From Chrysemys picta bellii (Eukaryota), in NCBI RefSeq assembly GCF_011386835.1, contig NC_088804.1:13020001-13084000 (forward strand): a DNA stretch of 64,000 nt, written 5' to 3'. Both the position numbers and the translations under genes were made by a program. Shown here in pieces: positions 4,351 to 58,883 of this stretch (position 1 is the stretch's first letter; each line of letters opens with the position of its first letter). The notes beneath the pieces were generated by a model that worked only from the letters and a program-made list of their open reading frames with translations, had not been told where the DNA came from and did not search any database.

Positions 4351-4464
4351 ATCTGTGAAGAAGAATGTTTCTGGTACTTTTCTGGGCTCTGTCTTGGTTA
4401 GAAGTGTTTGGTATCCCTAGAAATTTCTTGAGATCCTTTCTAGCTAAATCTTCCAGATAGACAA

Positions 4465-6631
4465 ATGGAGTCCCAGGTGCGCCAGAACTTCCATGCTGAA
4501 TGTGATGCTGCTGTGAACCGCATGGTAAACCTGGAGCTGTATGCCAGCTATGTCTATTTGTCCATGGTGAGTGTAGTTCAAGAGCTGTGCTGTTAAGCTT
4601 TTTCAAATCACTTTGTTTTAGCTCCCATGAGAGCTAGCTTGTCTGCTACTGTATGGTTTAAAAAAAAAAAAAAAAACCTCTAGCTGTATGCTGTACCAGT
4701 GGACAATACAGGAGAGCAGTGAGGGCATAAAACTACTTCTGACCCTTGTGGTTTTGTGGCATGTTAGTGGAGAAGCCTCTGAGTCTGAATCTTAACAGCC
4801 ATTTCTGAGGCTTCTTTGTGGGAGAGTGGGAAAACTTAATACGAGCAGACATGTTCTCTGTCAAGTGAGAGAATTGATCATAGGGTGCTGTTAGCTTGAG
4901 GCTTTATTACCTTCACTAATCTCCTCTACTGTTCCCCAGTCCTACTACTTTGACCGTGATGACGTGGCCCTGAGGCACGTGGCCCAGTTTCTGAAGGAGC
5001 AATCCCATGAGGAGAGGGAGCATGCAGCAAAGTTCCTGAAATACCAGAACAAGCGAGGGGGACGCATTGTCCTGCAGGACATCAAGGTATGCAACAAATC
5101 AACGTGTGTCCCTGGGAGGGTGGGGGAGTGGACTCTAGACTGAGGTTAATCACCATGTGTGGGGTTGGAGCTAGAACTCTCTTCTCTAAAGGAAAGAGAT
5201 GAGGCTTCCTGGGAGATCTGATTATCCCAAATGGCATTATTCCTGTGGTAAACTAGAGCTGTATGTTTCAAAAGCATCTGCCTTTGGCCCTCTAGTAAAG
5301 GGTACACGAAGGTATGGGTGGGCCTCTGATTGTGCTAAAAGCACAGGCTAGGTTTGCTTAGCTGAGACCAGGCCATCTACTTCATCACTTCACAAGCAAT
5401 GACTTTAGTTCATAATTATAGAACCCTAAAAGGGATGAATAGTGCTGTTATCGGTGGGGGTGGAAACCTGCTTTGGATGAAAAATTACAATTTGGTAACA
5501 AGGAGAGTGATGTCTGGTTCTCTTCCATGGCTCACCTCTACAGAAGCCAGAGCGGGATGCGTGGGGGAACAGCCTGGAGGCCCTGCAATGTGCCCTGGAG
5601 CTGGAGAAGACTCTGAACCAGGCACTGCTGGACCTGCACAAGCTGGCTATGGAGAAGAATGATCCCCATGTGAGTTAATTGTCTTATGTGCGTTGATGGT
5701 GTCAAAAGAAAAGGTCTGTCTGGACCAGCATTTTAGAAGATGGGTTCTTCAGTCTATCTCAATGCAGAGAATGGAGTGGGAGGGCAGGAGAGGGTAAGGA
5801 TGGGAAGGGAAATGCAAGTGATTATTTTGCAGCTAACTTTTCTACTGCTGTCTGTGGTGTGTACCAGGTGAGTAATCTTCTGGATAGCCTCACCTTCCCT
5901 GGGAGCAATTCCTATGTTGCTTGCTGTGTTGGCACCAGAACAGGCTGCTTCCACATGAGCACTATGTGGTGTATCAGTAGACAAAGCTGTCCCTGCAAAA
6001 GCTTTGCTTTTATTTAGATTGCTGGGGGCGGGGGAGGAAGACTTACATTGTGGTTTCAGGCCTGGTCAGGGAAGAGTGTGCAGGGGTGGGCAAGAAGGAA
6101 TTTCTCACTTGCACAAATGCCCATTCTGACCCTTCAGGTACACATCCCTGACCTGTGGGATATTTTTACCCTTATGCTGGACTCAGGGTGTGCACCTTTT
6201 GAGTCCTATAGAGTTGAGAGCTGGCCCTAATGCATTCTTCTGATGTAGAAGTCTGCTTGGACAGTAACTGAGCTACTGAGTGTCCTCAAAGGCCAAATGG
6301 GTGACCTAGAAACTTGAGGCACTTATGAAATGAGGGCCAGTTAACCAATGGGTGAAGTCTTGAGTTAAACACATGGTTCTCAGGCCTGCCTGTGTTGGTC
6401 ACTAAGACTGTTGTAGCTACTAAGTTTGGCAGCAGTGCCTATCGGCGCAGGAGTGAGTCCCTCTTTCTTTTGCAGTTATGTGACTTCCTAGAGTCTGAGT
6501 ATCTGGAGGAGCAGGTGAAGGCCATCAAGCAGCTGGGAGACCACCTCACCAACCTGAAGCGCCTGGGGGTGCCCCAGAACGGCATGGGAGAGTACCTGTT
6601 TGACAAGCATACCCTGGGGGAGAGCAGCTGA
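4465..6631 (+). CDS. Ferritin g1, 176 aa, amphibian H/M (higher/middle subunit)-like, intact
   Basis: Exons 4465-4566, 4940-5086, 5544-5669, 6476-6631 with GT-AG introns. [34 protein letters not shown] / [32 protein letters not shown]... / [22 protein letters not shown]... / [15 protein letters not shown]...KHTLGESS*. Ferroxidase residues E27, Y34, E61, E62, H65, E107, Q141 present; AATAAA 6737-6742. Confidence 0.95.
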
Positions 6632-6900
6632 ACTCTGCACTAGGGACCTGAACAGTAGTGTAGATCATGATGTCATAGCTGCATTACGCTGGATATAGAT
6701 CAGAAAATAGATGTCTTGTCTTACCTAAATACTGAGAATAAAATCTCTGCTTTCTGGTGTAACCTGGCTCATGTGATATTACTCCAACTGGGGATGCAGG
6801 CTGGTTTCCCCACAGATGCTGTAGTGGATGAATACTAATGTATAGTGACTCACTAAGAAGAGCAGGTATCTTGTGAGGTGGAGTGGGGAAATGACTGGAG

Positions 6901-7470
6901 CATGGTCCTCAACAGTGTTCTTTGAGACTAAAGAACATGTGGTAGAGGGCTGTGATGGGACAGGGTCTGCATGGGACAATGGTGCAGGGAACTGTCTGTG
7001 CCATGAAGTGACTTTGGCGTGGGTGGTGGTGGTGTGAAATCACAGCACAACAAGTTCCCCTTAGATCCATGGTTCTCAAGCTATGGGGTGGGCTTCCCAA
7101 GGGGGGATGCAAGATGTGTGGTAAGATCTCTGGCTGTCCACCTTGGATGGCTGGGGCTCATGCCGAAGGGCTGTCCACACCTGGGAGGGGGGGATGAAGG
7201 GGACAGCCAGAACGCTGCCACCTGGGCTAGGGCTCACCCACTCTGCCCCAATCCCCCACCAGGAGGTGGCAAGGCTCTGGCTGTCCACCCTGGGGTGGCA
7301 GCACCAGTGCAGAAGTAAAGGTGGCAATAGGGTGCTAAGCCTGCTGTGACAAGTGAGAGGGAGGCAATGTGAAATTAATCACTTACCTCTATACTGGTGC
7401 AGCACTGCCTTCAGAGCTGGGTGGCAGTAATGCCCTGGGGAAGGGGAGTGATAAAGTTTGAGAACCACTG
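6901..7470. mobile_element. Degraded hAT-like DNA transposon remnant
   Basis: Right end AAAGTTTGAGAACCACTG is a typical hAT TIR; left end catggtcctcaac matches only weakly; no TSD found. Confidence 0.35.
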
Positions 7471-8179
7471 CCTTGGCTGTGCTTGCGGCTAGAAGCAAGG
7501 TTCTGCAGTTAAAGTTCTCTACTGCTAGCTGTGCTGTGTAAGGAACTCCTAGTCTTTAATCCATCCCAGTGGAGATGATTCTTGTGAGCCCCTAGGGGTG
7601 TGGGGGTGTGTGTATAAACATGTTGCTTTCTGGGGTGACGTGGTCCATTCTCAATTTGCTACTAACATAGAGGTTTGCAGTACGGTGGATCTGACCTACT
7701 GTCCCCCCTGCTGGTCCTATTTCTAGAGCTGAGGTTCCAGTGTGGGGTGGTGTGTAGTGGGGGGGGGTGTGTGGTGTGTAGTGTGTGTGTGGGGGGGGGG
7801 GGGCTTTTTTTTTTTTTCTGGCCCCAGTCATACATGGGTTGTAGTTTTCTCCTGGTCTGTATGTGGTTGGTGGTATAGTTTTCCCCCAGTTCCCTACAAG
7901 ATGTGGCAACCTATTTGCAAAGCAACTGCTGTACCAGTTGTTTGCATTGCAGGGACTTAGTCTACTGCTGAGGCACCCTTGACCCATCAGCTGTTCTCCA
8001 CTTTCAGTGTTTCTTCATTAGTCCTCAAACTGGCTATTTTAGCCAGAGCTTGAGGACAGGACCAACCTCTGCATTTTCTCTCCTGTAGTAATGAGGTGGC
8101 AAAATATTGACTGTATCTAATCATGACAGTGAAGCGCAAAAGGGCTGGATTGGTTTTCTCCTTTTCCCTTTTACTGCAG

Positions 8180-57119: not shown

Positions 57120-57990
57120 CTCTAGAGCCCAACAGACCAAGAAAAGACAGTGAGATAAATAACCTGCATTTAAATTGCTACATTGCTTTTGTATATCACA
57201 TCTATGTTTCTGCCATGATAGGTTTACGTCATGTATAAATAAAGTGGATGGGAGCTCCAGGGAGGTTTCCCATCAGCCTGTGCTTGGACATTTGCTCCCA
57301 CTGCCCACCCAGCCTCTGTTGTGGCAGATATCGCCCCAAGGAGCAAGTCCTGCAGGAAGTGAGAAGCTGTTCCCTTTCAGAGGGGAATAAAGAATACGAA
57401 CCCCATATTCTCCAGCACGAGACAGGATAGTTACACAATCACAGAAGTCTGGAAAGCTGGTCAAAAAGGCTGGGATGAGATGAAGATTTCTGCCAGCTTA
57501 AAATAACACTACCTAACTCACTTCCTGGAACGCAATAGGACAACACTGCCTAAATTACTTACTCATGCCTGAGACTAGATAGGCATAGCTTGTCTGAAGG
57601 AAAGTAAACATTGGTCCTTTACTGAAGAGAGTCTGAATAAAAGCATTACCCTCATACCAGCTATTAAATATGCAGCCGCATACACAAGGTTAGAAAATTC
57701 CATGGAATTCCCTGAACCACCTTACAGTAATGGGGCTGCTTGTATATGGAGGTGACTGTTTTTAGTGTTTTCTCTTTCTGTGCTTCTGCCTGTGCTTGCT
57801 ATGGATTTTGGATCAAATCTGTTTTCTTATTCACATTTGTTTCAAGGGGTAGAAGAATGGAAAGTAGAAGAAGTCATTGACTGACTGGCATGAATCACAT
57901 GGGTTTGGAGTATGTGAGATTGGCTATGGAACCTGAAAGACAGACAGAGGTGGGAACCACATCTGTGCTGATTCCTCCCATTGTTTCTAT

Positions 57991-58275
57991 GGCTGGGTCT
58001 ACACTACCCGCCTGAATCGGCGAGTAGAAATCGACCTCTCGGGGATCGATTTATCGTGTCCCGTCGGGACGCGACAATTGATCCCCGAATTGACGCTCTT
58101 ACTCCACCAGCGGAGGTGGGAGTAAGCGCCGTCGACGGGAAGCCGCAGAGGTCGATTTTGCCGCCGTCCTCACAGCGGGGTAAGTCGGCTGCGATACGTC
58201 GAATTCAGCTACGCTATTCACGTAGCTGAATTTGCGTATCTTAAATCGACCCCCCCCTGTAGTGTAGATGTAGCC
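57991..58275. mobile_element. PIF/Harbinger-like MITE, CpG-rich
   Basis: TIRs GGCTGGGTCTACACTA / TAGTGTAGATGTAGCC; 3-bp TSD TAT at 57988-57990 and 58276-58278. Confidence 0.8.
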
Positions 58276-58627
58276 TATGTCACAGTCCCCATTTTATCAT
58301 GAAATGTCCATGCTACACTTTCTGTCCTAACAGACCCTGGGATTCTTGAATGCATCAAGAAGTAACTCCAGCTACAGATATGGCAGGCCATGCTTCTAGT
58401 GGTTAAACACCTCTGACATCTCTCACAAGGTCCATGTGGGAAACAGTGGAGCTTGAACGCACTGGGTATCATGGCATCACCTCCTCTTTCTGCACCTTCT
58501 TTCCACTGGAGGGGATTGATCAAGAACCAGCAAATGGGCTGAATGTGCTGTTCTGGGAGTCTCTATATTCCCTCCTTTTTTTTTTTTTTTTCAAGGGGGT
58601 ATAATGGCAACAGGAGCGTTCATGCTG

Positions 58628-58760
58628 GTGAGTCAGCTACTCACCAGTGCAAATTCTGCAAACCTACAATGCGGATTGGTGTCTTGGGGAGGAAGGGAAC
58701 TTTCATTGGGCAGTAGTATCTGTAAAGCACAGTAAAGTTTCCTCTGAGCAGTATTTATAT
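58628..58760 (+). promoter_or_regulatory. g9 promoter: AP-1/ARE-like site, two inverted CCAAT boxes, TATA-like box
   Basis: GTGAGTCAGC 58628-58637, ATTGG at 58675 and 58705, TATTTATA at about 58752. Confidence 0.6.
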
Positions 58761-58883
58761 CAGCTTGTGCTAAGGGAAGAATTCTGTTTCTAGGCTGTGT
58801 GCTTGTGCCAGCAGCGTTTGAACACAGTGGGGTCTATTGATATTTGTTATTGTTAATTAAGGCTAGAGCTGATAGATTTAGAA

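Follow-up and report, generated by a model that had tools for sequence, protein, structure and literature searches.

The 64-kb stretch of the Chrysemys picta bellii genome analyzed here (the window) is a tandem array of H-type ferritin genes with four exons, and the conclusion that no copy keeps a working iron-responsive element (IRE) is supported by all the tests that we ran. The array copies carry only mutated relics of the IRE, and their activation is therefore probably transcriptional; a turtle ferritin array whose IREs decayed in place is, taken as a whole, the likely explanation of the observations described below. We found no earlier description of such an IRE-less turtle ferritin array in the literature.

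The ferritin gene array

Five copies (g1, g2, g3, g5 and g6) are intact, with GT-AG introns and open frames for 176-aa ferritins; the remaining four, pseudogenes or fragments, are g4, g7, g8 and g9:

4465..6631, + strand: g1, intact gene for a 176-aa H-type ferritin with GT-AG introns and an open frame (exons 4465-4566, 4940-5086, 5544-5669 and 6476-6631, + strand)
11602..14595, + strand: g2, intact gene for a 176-aa ferritin
21571..26408, + strand: g3, intact ferritin gene carrying the substitutions E57K and E130K (frog numbering)
30245..32599, + strand: g4, pseudogene with exon 3 deletions and an exon 4 stop
36047..38918, + strand: g5, intact ferritin gene
42940..45821, + strand: g6, intact ferritin gene
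49526..52360, + strand: g7, pseudogene, frameshifted in exons 1 and 2
53737..54345, + strand: g8, fragment limited to exons 2-3, after which comes a LINE reverse-transcriptase remnant
58884..61345, + strand: g9, ferritin copy whose exon 2 is frameshifted

The array also includes four isolated exon fragments that are clearly dead, and g3 has an extra in-frame ATG 15 nt upstream. Exons 2 and 4 match the Pfam Ferritin family, and only exon 2 passes the Pfam score cut-off. The proteins are 77-85% identical to frog ferritins, the nearest solved structures are the bullfrog ferritins 1BG7 and 1MFR, and the NCBI name for such genes is 'ferritin heavy chain A-like'. The intact genes are under purifying selection: dN/dS is 0.12-0.20 between paralogues and 0.09-0.37 between orthologues (0.09-0.18 for g1), the latter comparison spanning roughly 100-200 million years of divergence. 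The ferroxidase residues are intact in g1, g2, g5 and g6, with g3 as the exception among the intact genes.

Relics of the iron-responsive element

Five features define the IRE: the C14-G18 pair, A15-G16-U17, a pyrimidine in position N19, C8 as a bulge and a helix of 5 bp (PMC8466369). Between the TATA box and the ATG of the array copies lies a stretch homologous to this element, with clear homology in g1-g4 and g9 and weak homology in g5-g7. In the following list, n14 is the first loop base, and the features are the five given above:

4341, 11465, 21470, 30118, 35942, 42810, 49396 and 58752: TATA-like boxes
4389..4419, + strand: g1 relic, loop AAGTGT, n14 = 4402, 2 of 5 features, with G at the C8 position and an upper stem in which one pair is Watson-Crick and four are wobbles
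11515..11545, + strand: g2 relic, loop GAGTGG, n14 = 11528, 2 of 5 features
21500..21530, + strand: g3 relic, loop GGGTGT, n14 = 21513, lacking C8, 1 of 5 features
30168-30198, + strand: g4 relic, loop GAGTGT, n14 = 30181
35973-36003, + strand: g5 relic, loop TAGTGG at 35986, 1 of 5 features
42862-42892, + strand: g6 relic, loop GAGAAG, n14 = 42875, 1 of 5 features
58799-58829, + strand: g9 relic, loop CAGCGT, n14 = 58812, broken 5' arm, 2 of 5 features

The relic loops are located 58-74 nt upstream of the respective ATGs. The relics start 31-57 nt downstream of the TATA-like boxes, g3 being the outlier at 31, compared with the 45-55 nt given in the preliminary description. Using local alignment with the 28-nt core of the Rfam-called frog IRE, we found that the observed score was reached by none of 1000 shuffles for g2 and g9, by 9 for g4, 13 for g1, 24 for g3, 30 for g5, 100 for g6 and 130 for g7. 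These low counts place the homology of the g1-g4 and g9 relics beyond chance; the assignment in g5-g7 is mainly by position, and no recognisable relic was detected between the TATA-like box and the ATG of g7. All six loops that had been read for g1, g2, g3, g4, g6 and g9 are present where they had been placed, and the characterization of g5 and g7 as barely recognisable fits the shuffle counts. The notion of a recognisable homologue in each copy stands for g1-g4 and g9 and is weaker than implied for g6.

Tests for a functional iron-responsive element

Each relic in the window has at most two of the five defining features, and a frog member of the family has all five and scores 47.9 bits with the Rfam IRE model. 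The Rfam models IRE_I and IRE_II yielded no match in the window at the gathering threshold or at E<=10, and covariance model searches of 106-136-nt segments found no IRE. The canonical pattern (a C-bulge, a CAG[T/A]GH loop and at least 4 of 5 upper-stem pairs) is absent from the + strand of the whole 64-kb window. A permissive SIREs-style scan with 22 motifs, which recovers the frog IRE, detected none in the 5'UTR of any intact turtle gene. The folding z-scores of the excised relic segments range from +0.4 to -1.5 (g5 was not folded alone), compared with -3.2 for the frog IRE.

The pattern search, the feature counts and Rfam thus agree with the earlier claim that no copy has a canonical CAGUGH loop on an intact stem, and the Rfam and SIREs comparisons that had been proposed as checks on it gave the same answer. 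The extension of the claim to every paralog is borne out across the window and by 16 genes from three other turtles; 'every paralog' refers here to these genes, with at least one further transcribed paralogue, located beyond the window, and the conventional FTH1 falling outside this set. Because g4, g7, g8 and g9 are dead, IRE decay in these four of the nine copies is uninformative on regulation, and the claim therefore matters only for g1, g2, g3, g5 and g6.

Transcription of the array genes

The g1, g3 and g6 genes are transcribed and spliced. Spliced RNA contigs of g1 span all three introns, with a depth of 3000-4400 in run X1 (contig depth is a poor measure of expression), and a contig from run X4 is collinear with the genome from 4363, about 20 nt past the TATA box, into exon 1, from where it is spliced to exon 2. 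This contig reaches upstream of the g1 relic, which is therefore inside the mRNA. For g3, an X1 contig contains exon 1 sequence (21642-21671, exact match) and runs on into exon 2. For g6, the 5'UTR segment 42909-42938 is exactly matched in an X1 RNA contig that reaches about 118 nt upstream of the ATG. RNA-type runs contain up to 0.16 of the sampled words of g2.

The mRNAs could have other start sites or include a non-coding exon, further upstream, with a canonical IRE, which would render the relics irrelevant; Logan contigs cannot fix transcription starts, and the 5' end is documented for g1 only and, indirectly, for g6. Nevertheless, this scenario appears extremely improbable, given that the window contains no canonical IRE on the + strand, that none was found in the 10 kb upstream of ferritin genes in other turtles, that the g1 contig is collinear with the genome, and that no splice joint leads from 1000-4362 into g1 exon 1. 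That IRE decay merely reflects general gene death, the array being a set of dead duplicates without any regulated function, would fit the state of g4, g7, g8, g9 and the isolated exon fragments, and the stop in exon 3 of the Chelydra g2 gene. For the five intact genes, this reading is contradicted by the open frames and GT-AG introns, by the orthologue dN/dS values, by the catalytic residues preserved in four of the five, by the conserved promoters and by the abundant spliced transcripts in run X1; we regard it as most improbable.

Loss of the element in other reptiles

The array is turtle-wide. Comparison with 16 genes from Chelydra, Gopherus and Emydura, and with three squamate genes (from Anolis, Pogona and Python), revealed no Rfam IRE in any of them; the relics have at most 3 of 5 features in the other turtles and 4 of 5 in Anolis. 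Between turtles, the identity is 78-94% for the relics, 73-91% for introns and 87-99% for promoters. Thus, the relics diverge at the intron rate, promoters are more conserved than relics, and different critical bases have changed in different lineages. For example, the loop of the g3 orthologues is CAGTGT in Chelydra (without C8), TGGTGT in Gopherus (the only one that retains C8) and GGGTGT in the window. As read from these sequences, the loss of the IRE is old and parallel.

Some of the relics might be weak or atypical IRP ligands, such that part of the array would keep an attenuated iron-dependent translational control. The candidates are g2, the U14.G18 versions found in Chelydra and Gopherus, and Anolis. 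The g2 relic is the best preserved and, because it retains C8, A15-G16-U17 and 4 of 5 stem pairs together with the GAGTGG loop (a G-G cross-loop), weak IRP binding is possible. Furthermore, SIREs motif 17 combines C8 with GAGUG(A/U), that is, a G-G cross-loop; in-vitro selection (SELEX) accepted G-G and U-A cross-loops; and, in a yeast three-hybrid study, changes of the C1-G5 pair affected IRP2 less than IRP1. However, N19 of g2 is a G, a base that motif 17 bars, the upper stem contains a U.U mismatch, and n25 is a G able to pair with C8; the g2 relic shows no Rfam match at E<=10 within 136 nt and does not fold as an IRE (z-score of -0.05). Moreover, n14 is G or U among the g2 orthologues, and the relic is only 81% identical to those of Gopherus and Emydura, the two orthologues covered here, which is no higher than the g2 intron identity in the comparison with Gopherus. 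In humans, U14-G18 and C8 variants show binding in vitro and fail in vivo (PMC8466369). On balance, weak ligand activity seems unlikely.

Co-option of the relic for another role, for instance as a hairpin close to the cap or as a target of another RNA-binding protein, is suggested by the z-scores of the whole 5'UTRs of g6 (-2.1) and g3 (-1.8), which fold somewhat better than shuffles, and by the fairly conserved stretch just upstream of the ATG among orthologues. Yet the excised relics of g1, g2 and g3 have z-scores near 0 (-1.5 for g6), no motif is common to the relics of the paralogues, and their divergence is at the intron level, so that we consider co-option very unlikely.

Promoters and a putative MARE

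In contrast to the relics, the promoters are well conserved: for g1, the identity between turtles is 90-99%, compared with 74-89% for introns. Two of the promoter regions include sites of the NF-E2/MARE type:

4207..4217, + strand: exact NF-E2/MARE-type site of g1, TGCTGAGTCAT, 258 and about 135 nt upstream of the ATG and the TATA box, respectively
4341..4348, + strand: g1 TATA-like box, CATTAATA, with inverted CCAAT and CACCC boxes directly upstream
35651-35660: MARE-type site of g5, sharing its core with TGCTGAGTCAT of g1

Chelydra, Gopherus and Emydura each have the identical sequence at -259, four turtles in all sharing the g1 site; one Gopherus gene has the MARE core of g1 and g5. Strict MARE matches in 299 kb number six, all of them 226-396 nt upstream of ferritin ATGs, against a chance expectation of 1.1 anywhere. 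No MARE was found within 900 nt of g2, and the versions in the other copies are degenerate. Mammalian ferritin genes have AREs to which Nrf2 binds, with Bach1 as the gatekeeper (PMC6208163).

Under the decay-in-place scenario, the common ancestor of the array genes, which are amphibian-type H ferritins, would have had a classical cap-proximal 5'UTR IRE whose maintenance ceased after duplication. Each copy would now carry a neutrally drifting relic lacking the IRP contacts, namely the cross-loop pairing of C14 with G18, the C8 bulge and an upper helix of five clean base pairs, and IRP1 and IRP2 would no longer repress the array mRNAs. The array genes have thus probably lost IRP control, in which case ferritin output would follow the mRNA level. 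The latter would be set by the conserved promoter, with its inverted CCAAT, CACCC and TATA elements, complemented in g1, g5 and one Gopherus copy by a putative CNC-bZIP/small-Maf site that could mediate activation by Nrf2 or NF-E2 and repression by heme-sensitive Bach1. We only tentatively suggest that the MARE is part of this transcriptional control. Together, the conserved promoter and the putative MARE lend only indirect support to IRP-independent translation and transcriptional control.

Comparison with known systems

The vertebrate ferritin 5'UTR IRE (Rfam RF00037; bullfrog H/M ferritin, the Pelobates gene) belongs to the same gene family as the array, occupies the same place as the turtle relics, close to the mRNA 5' end and between the TATA box and the ATG, and is recognisably the same sequence. 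In the turtle elements, by contrast, C14, C8 or the 5-bp helix is missing; they have neither a covariance-model score nor a folding signal, and do not exceed 2 of 5 features in the window and 3 of 5 in the other turtles. In hereditary hyperferritinaemia-cataract syndrome, changes at C14, A15 and C8 of the human FTL IRE, the positions altered in the turtle relics, eliminate regulation and cause constitutive ferritin synthesis (PMC8466369). The human lesions are rare dominant disease alleles of one gene, whereas those of the turtles are fixed, affect every copy with several changes per element and extend across a reptile order.

With respect to transcription, the g1 site is akin to the ARE/MARE enhancers of mammalian FTH1 and FTL, which are activated by Nrf2 with small Maf and repressed by Bach1 until heme releases it. 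However, the mammalian ARE works together with the IRE, whereas the putative turtle site would act alone and promoter-proximally, and is missing in g2 and degenerate in other copies. In nematodes (ftn-1/ftn-2) and plants, iron controls ferritin transcriptionally, with promoter elements instead of an IRE setting its expression; these are other lineages with other cis-elements, and any iron-responsive promoter element of the turtle genes is putative. Among vertebrates, mitochondrial FTMT and the X-linked FTHL17 family are, like the array genes, IRE-less H-like ferritin paralogues; they show tissue-specific transcription and no IRP control. FTMT and FTHL17, as retrocopies, lack introns and never inherited the 5'UTR; in contrast, the turtle genes retain all their introns, the architecture of the ancestral promoter and a relic that is still visible, which argues that their IRE was lost by decay in place.

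Gene content of the array

A tblastn search of the window with the exons of the first gene identified ferritin genes in a head-to-tail array on the plus strand, denoted g1 to g9. An open frame of 176 codons, four exons and GT-AG introns are retained in five copies (g1, g2, g3, g5 and g6), and the other copies are dead or partial:

g1: 4465-6631, plus strand, intact ferritin gene
g2: 11602-14595, plus strand, intact ferritin gene
g3: 21571-26408, plus strand, intact ferritin gene
g4: exon 3 has deletions, exon 4 a stop
g5: 36047-38918, plus strand, intact ferritin gene
g6: 42940-45821, plus strand, intact ferritin gene
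g7: frameshifts
g8: 53737-54345, exons 2-3 only, adjoining a LINE reverse-transcriptase remnant
g9: frameshift in exon 2
Isolated ferritin exon fragments: 8200-8313 and 19017-19100; 62102-61994 on the minus strand

The exon-4 fragment that follows g1 is found at the same position in the turtles Chelydra, Gopherus and Emydura, and the position of the exon-1 fragment that precedes g3 is matched in Chelydra and Gopherus; hence these fragments are old. Just after the truncated g8, an ORF on the minus strand (55178-55642) contains a reverse-transcriptase domain (RVT_1, 3.5e-15) and is probably the LINE insertion that destroyed this copy. Long, near-perfect palindromic hairpins are present at 56864-57042, 20110-20272 and 41238-41342; these resemble several miRNA models, each below the gathering score, have similar counterparts in the Gopherus locus (L008:18026-18473), and look like MITE-type repeats.

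Protein family and selection

With the ORF containing exon 3 of g9 as the query, turtle proteins annotated as 'ferritin heavy chain A(-like)' came out as the closest database entries; g3 shows 97.7% identity to a Terrapene protein, and g6 98.3% to a Chrysemys protein, which points to an emydid-like turtle. The wider family is that of the 176-residue amphibian-type H/M ferritins, with 75-90% identity to frog, salamander, caecilian, tuatara and squamate proteins, and the closest solved structures are the bullfrog ferritins 1BG7 and 1MFR (match of the full-length orthologue P0004 to 1BG7 at 3.7e-95). The four-helix-bundle domain of ferritin (PF00210) is matched by exon 2 at 1.1e-09 and by exon 4 at 0.0036, under the Pfam cut-off. 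The ferroxidase-centre residues E23, Y30, E58, H61, E103 and Q137 (frog numbering) are kept in all five intact copies, and g3 carries two additional changes, E57K next to the ferroxidase site and E130K within the three-fold channel (same numbering). The conserved start of g3 is also preceded, 15 nt upstream, by a second in-frame ATG (21556-21570), which would add the residues MSSSV; this extra N-terminus is identical in Chelydra and Gopherus, and the related database proteins are 181 aa long.

The dN/dS values are 0.09-0.37 for orthologues and 0.12-0.20 for paralogues. The open frame, splice sites, purifying selection and transcription, by which a functional gene is judged, were found together for g1, g3 and g6, transcription being seen through contigs. 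In Chelydra, exon 3 of g2 (L001:18031-20978) contains an in-frame stop, so the set of live copies varies among turtle species.

Decayed iron-responsive elements upstream of the turtle genes

Between the TATA-like box and the ATG lie decayed iron-responsive element (IRE) homologues, referred to here as relics. All loop hexamers listed in the preliminary description were found at the positions it had quoted, and the elements indeed follow TATA-like boxes, although at a distance of 31-57 nt rather than the 45-55 nt that had been reported. As the IRE reference from the same family, we used the orthologue from the frog Pelobates, in which the Rfam model IRE_I detects an element with 47.9 bits (gathering score, 34 bits) whose loop starts 108 nt upstream of the ATG. 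The 28-nt core of this element was locally aligned against the 180 nt preceding every turtle ATG, with 1000 shuffles as the background. The observed score was reached by 0/1000 shuffles for g2 and g9, by 9-24 for g1, g3 and g4, and by 30-130 for g5, g6 and g7. The best matches of g1-g4, g6 and g9 occupy a common position relative to the ATG and the TATA box; for g5 and g7, the top-scoring matches lie elsewhere, and the g5 relic was assigned from the multiple alignment together with its position. These observations indicate that the relics are real in most copies and marginal for g5-g7, so that the characterization of g5 and g7 as barely recognisable is borne out and has to be extended to g6.

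The hallmarks of an IRE are C14 paired with G18 across the loop, the A15-G16-U17 triplet, U or C at N19, the bulged C8 and an upper helix of five pairs (Volz 2021, PMC8466369). We scored the relics in register against these five features.

IRE features retained in the frog control and in the turtle relics
Frog control (Pelobates): 5/5
g1 relic: 2/5
g2 relic: 2/5
g3 relic: 1/5
g4 relic: 2/5
g5 relic: 1/5
g6 relic: 1/5
g9 relic: 2/5

The C14-G18 combination, present in the frog control, is retained only in the pseudogene g9; the first loop base, n14, is A in g1, G in g2, g3, g4 and g6, and U in g5. The A15-G16-U17 triplet is kept in g1, g2, g4 and g5, never in combination with all the other features, and is replaced by GGU in g3, AGA in g6 and AGC in g9. 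N19 is U in g1, g3, g4 and g9, and G in g2, g5 and g6. At position 8, g1, g3 and g4 have G, g5 and g9 have U, and C is left in g2 and g6 only, both of which fail other features. None of the copies in the window has a five-pair upper helix: there are four wobbles in g1, the helix is interrupted by an internal mismatch in g2 and g3, and two to three mismatches occur in g4, g6 and g9. In folding, the frog IRE region forms the textbook hairpin (z = -3.2), and the turtle relics do not adopt the IRE fold, with z of +0.4 to -0.25 for g1, g2 and g3 and -1.5 for g6.

Profile and pattern searches gave the same picture. The Rfam models IRE_I and IRE_II have no match in the window at the gathering score or at E<=10, nor in the 136-nt leader of g2 searched alone with the laxest filters at E<=10. 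We also wrote a scan that follows the SIREs rules and covers the full set of 22 loop motifs in the SIREs 3.0 table (PMC12230718), with a tolerance of a single mismatch or a single 3' bulge and of up to two wobbles; it recovered the frog IRE as flawless and yielded no match in the 5'UTRs of the intact turtle genes. The claim that none of these elements is canonical is thus upheld, with no IRE found by either approach in the 5'UTRs of the intact genes.

The relic nearest to an IRE is that of g2, which combines C8 with a G-G cross-loop resembling SIREs motif 17. Relics of this kind may bind IRP weakly, which would leave some residual control; the departures of g2 are a G at N19, a U10.U23 mismatch, and a G at n25 that is able to pair with C8. 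As a whole, every sequence-based test supports the proposal of the preliminary description that the array escaped IRP control, which would pertain to the five live copies.

Several further candidates were considered and rejected. The two canonical-pattern matches in the whole window, at 32248 and 2616, are both on the minus strand, neither in sense to the ferritin genes, and are attributed to chance. A second candidate in g5, with a CAGAGT loop at 36010, has no C8 and leaves n13-n20 unpaired. Permissive SIREs-style matches, about 15 low-grade ones per strand in 64 kb, are at the chance level; a motif-21 match (30133) lies beside the TATA box of the pseudogene g4, and a motif-16 match falls within the exon 4 coding sequence of g1 (6580) and g5 (38867). 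At the latter two positions, the codons for NGMGEYL fit, with one mismatch, a SELEX-type IRE pattern of the permissive kind (C and GGGAGA separated by five bases); the same pattern is found in Chelydra and Gopherus and in all likelihood merely reflects the conservation of the coding sequence.

Transcription and 5' ends

In public runs of RNA type, the share of g1 and g2 words that is present roughly equals their exonic fraction, and it is from this word share that g2 is taken to be transcribed. Four RNA runs were aligned to positions 1000-6900 of the window. Contig joints connect 4565 to 4939, 5084 to 5542 and 5669 to 6476 at the GT..AG borders of g1, with a depth of 3000-4400 in run X1, compared with about 6 in runs X2 and X4. 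This roughly 1000-fold difference between runs suggests that expression strongly depends on tissue or condition, with the reservation that contigs yield neither exact starts nor reliable levels. A 365-nt contig from X4 starts at 4363, ~20 nt past the TATA-like box, covers the relic and exon 1, and continues across a splice joint into exon 2; the relic starts ~26 nt from the 5' end of this contig, and no upstream exon joined to exon 1 of g1 was seen among the contig joints of the four runs. The relic is therefore part of the g1 mRNA.

The loose ends of X1 contigs exactly match the 5'UTR of g6 (42909-42938) and the end of exon 1 of g3 (21642-21671). Two X1 contigs (at 4463) carry a g2-like 5'UTR that differs from g2 at 6/30 positions and has no match in the window, hence a further transcribed paralogue outside it. 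In one sample, then, g1, g3, g6 and at least one outside paralogue are transcribed. Upstream of g1, the stretches 1394-1787, 1985-2378 and 3364-3757 have a very high summed depth in each of the four runs and numerous joints that are inconsistent with one another, and behave as dispersed repeats, not exons.

Proposed parallel decay in turtles and the situation in squamates

We compared the syntenic arrays of Chelydra serpentina (4 genes with mapped starts), Gopherus flavomarginatus (6 genes) and the pleurodire Emydura macquarii (5 genes). The gene order g1, exon-4 fragment, g2 is common to all turtle arrays compared, and the array is accordingly older than the split of the two turtle suborders, which occurred roughly 200 million years ago. 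No Rfam IRE was detected in the Chelydra, Gopherus and Emydura loci at the gathering score or E<=1, nor in the g3 UTR of Chelydra searched alone at E<=10, and the relics of these turtles retain at most 3/5 features.

The lesions differ between orthologues, with n14, n15 and C8 all variable: n14 of g2 is G in the window species and Emydura and U in Chelydra and Gopherus, and for g3, Chelydra has a CAGTGT loop without C8, Gopherus has C8 with TGGTGT, and the window has neither. When the relics are pooled, every canonical part of the IRE survives in some copy, which leads us to infer a normal IRE in the ancestor of the array and subsequent decay of the copies in parallel. The identity between orthologous relics (78-94%) is at the level of introns (73-91%); identity is 87-99% over the 80-110 nt up to and just past the TATA box, and 89-97% in exons.

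Among squamates, Anolis, Pogona and Python (one gene each) yielded no IRE. The nearest element is that of Anolis sagrei (L005:9929-9960), which keeps 4/5 features, including C8 and a CAGTGT loop; it has mismatches at n9-n24 and n7-n25 and gave no covariance-model match even in 114 nt. In squamates, the IRE may have decayed to a lesser extent or independently. The loss of the IRE is common to both turtle suborders and probably extends to squamates.

Promoter elements and a candidate MARE site

The paralogous promoters have in common two inverted CCAAT boxes, a CACCC box and a TATA box. In addition, g1 contains an exact NF-E2/MARE consensus, TGCTGAGTCAT, at 4207, 258 nt upstream of the ATG, which is identical in Chelydra, Gopherus and Emydura. 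Because the loose ARE core RTGASNNNGC is too frequent to be informative (0.44 per kb), the strict 10-mer of the MARE/ARE pattern, TGCTGA(G/C)TCA(T/C), was used alone. This core is also present in g5 (35651) and in one Gopherus gene (L008:1460). In the 299 kb examined, there are six strict matches, each of them situated 226-396 nt upstream of a ferritin ATG, with ~1.1 expected anywhere by chance, four of the six representing one conserved orthologous site. The g2 gene lacks a MARE site, and the remaining copies have degenerate ones only. Such elements exist in mammalian FTH1 and FTL, where Nrf2 acts as the activator and the heme sensor Bach1 as the gate (PMC6208163), and a MARE-type control of genes of the array can be hypothesized. 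In the liver of anoxic slider turtles, ferritin heavy-chain expression is reported in a review to be raised, which has been ascribed to NF-kB control, the ferritin gene measured being unspecified (PMC8067143).

A tentative model and its relation to known ferritins

Ferritin is the textbook case of translational control by IRE and IRP, and vertebrate cytosolic H-ferritin genes are generally assumed to bear an IRE. The family described here contains introns, is selectively maintained and is transcribed, and yet has lost its IRE by decay in place. Under the model that we tentatively put forward, all copies would have given up their IREs in parallel once the gene had been duplicated, and promoter elements, including the heme- and oxidant-sensing MARE, would drive the array instead. 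In its full form, namely that turtles, and perhaps non-avian reptiles, possess a second cytosolic H-ferritin array with IREs lost in parallel and promoter/MARE-driven expression, next to an IRP-controlled one, this scenario is speculative and we consider it rather unlikely to hold in every part. If true, ferritin would be made whatever the IRP activity, e.g., in anoxia and reoxygenation or in one particular tissue, such as the erythroid lineage. A link to reptile physiology is possible, given the response of ferritin heavy chain in the anoxic slider-turtle liver (PMC8067143). The turtle array would provide a natural experiment on what replaces IRP control, and its relics a series of natural IRE mutants with which binding could be studied.

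No description of IRE-less reptile ferritin arrays was found in the searchable literature, in which coverage of subscription journals is thin, so this is weak evidence that a conserved, expressed, intron-containing vertebrate H-ferritin array with IREs decayed in place and in parallel is new. Ferritins without an IRE are known, namely FTMT, FTHL17, and nematode and plant ferritins. Point mutations that inactivate the IRE are known in human disease (PMC8466369). Within the same family, unlike the turtle genes, the frog member retains a perfect IRE.
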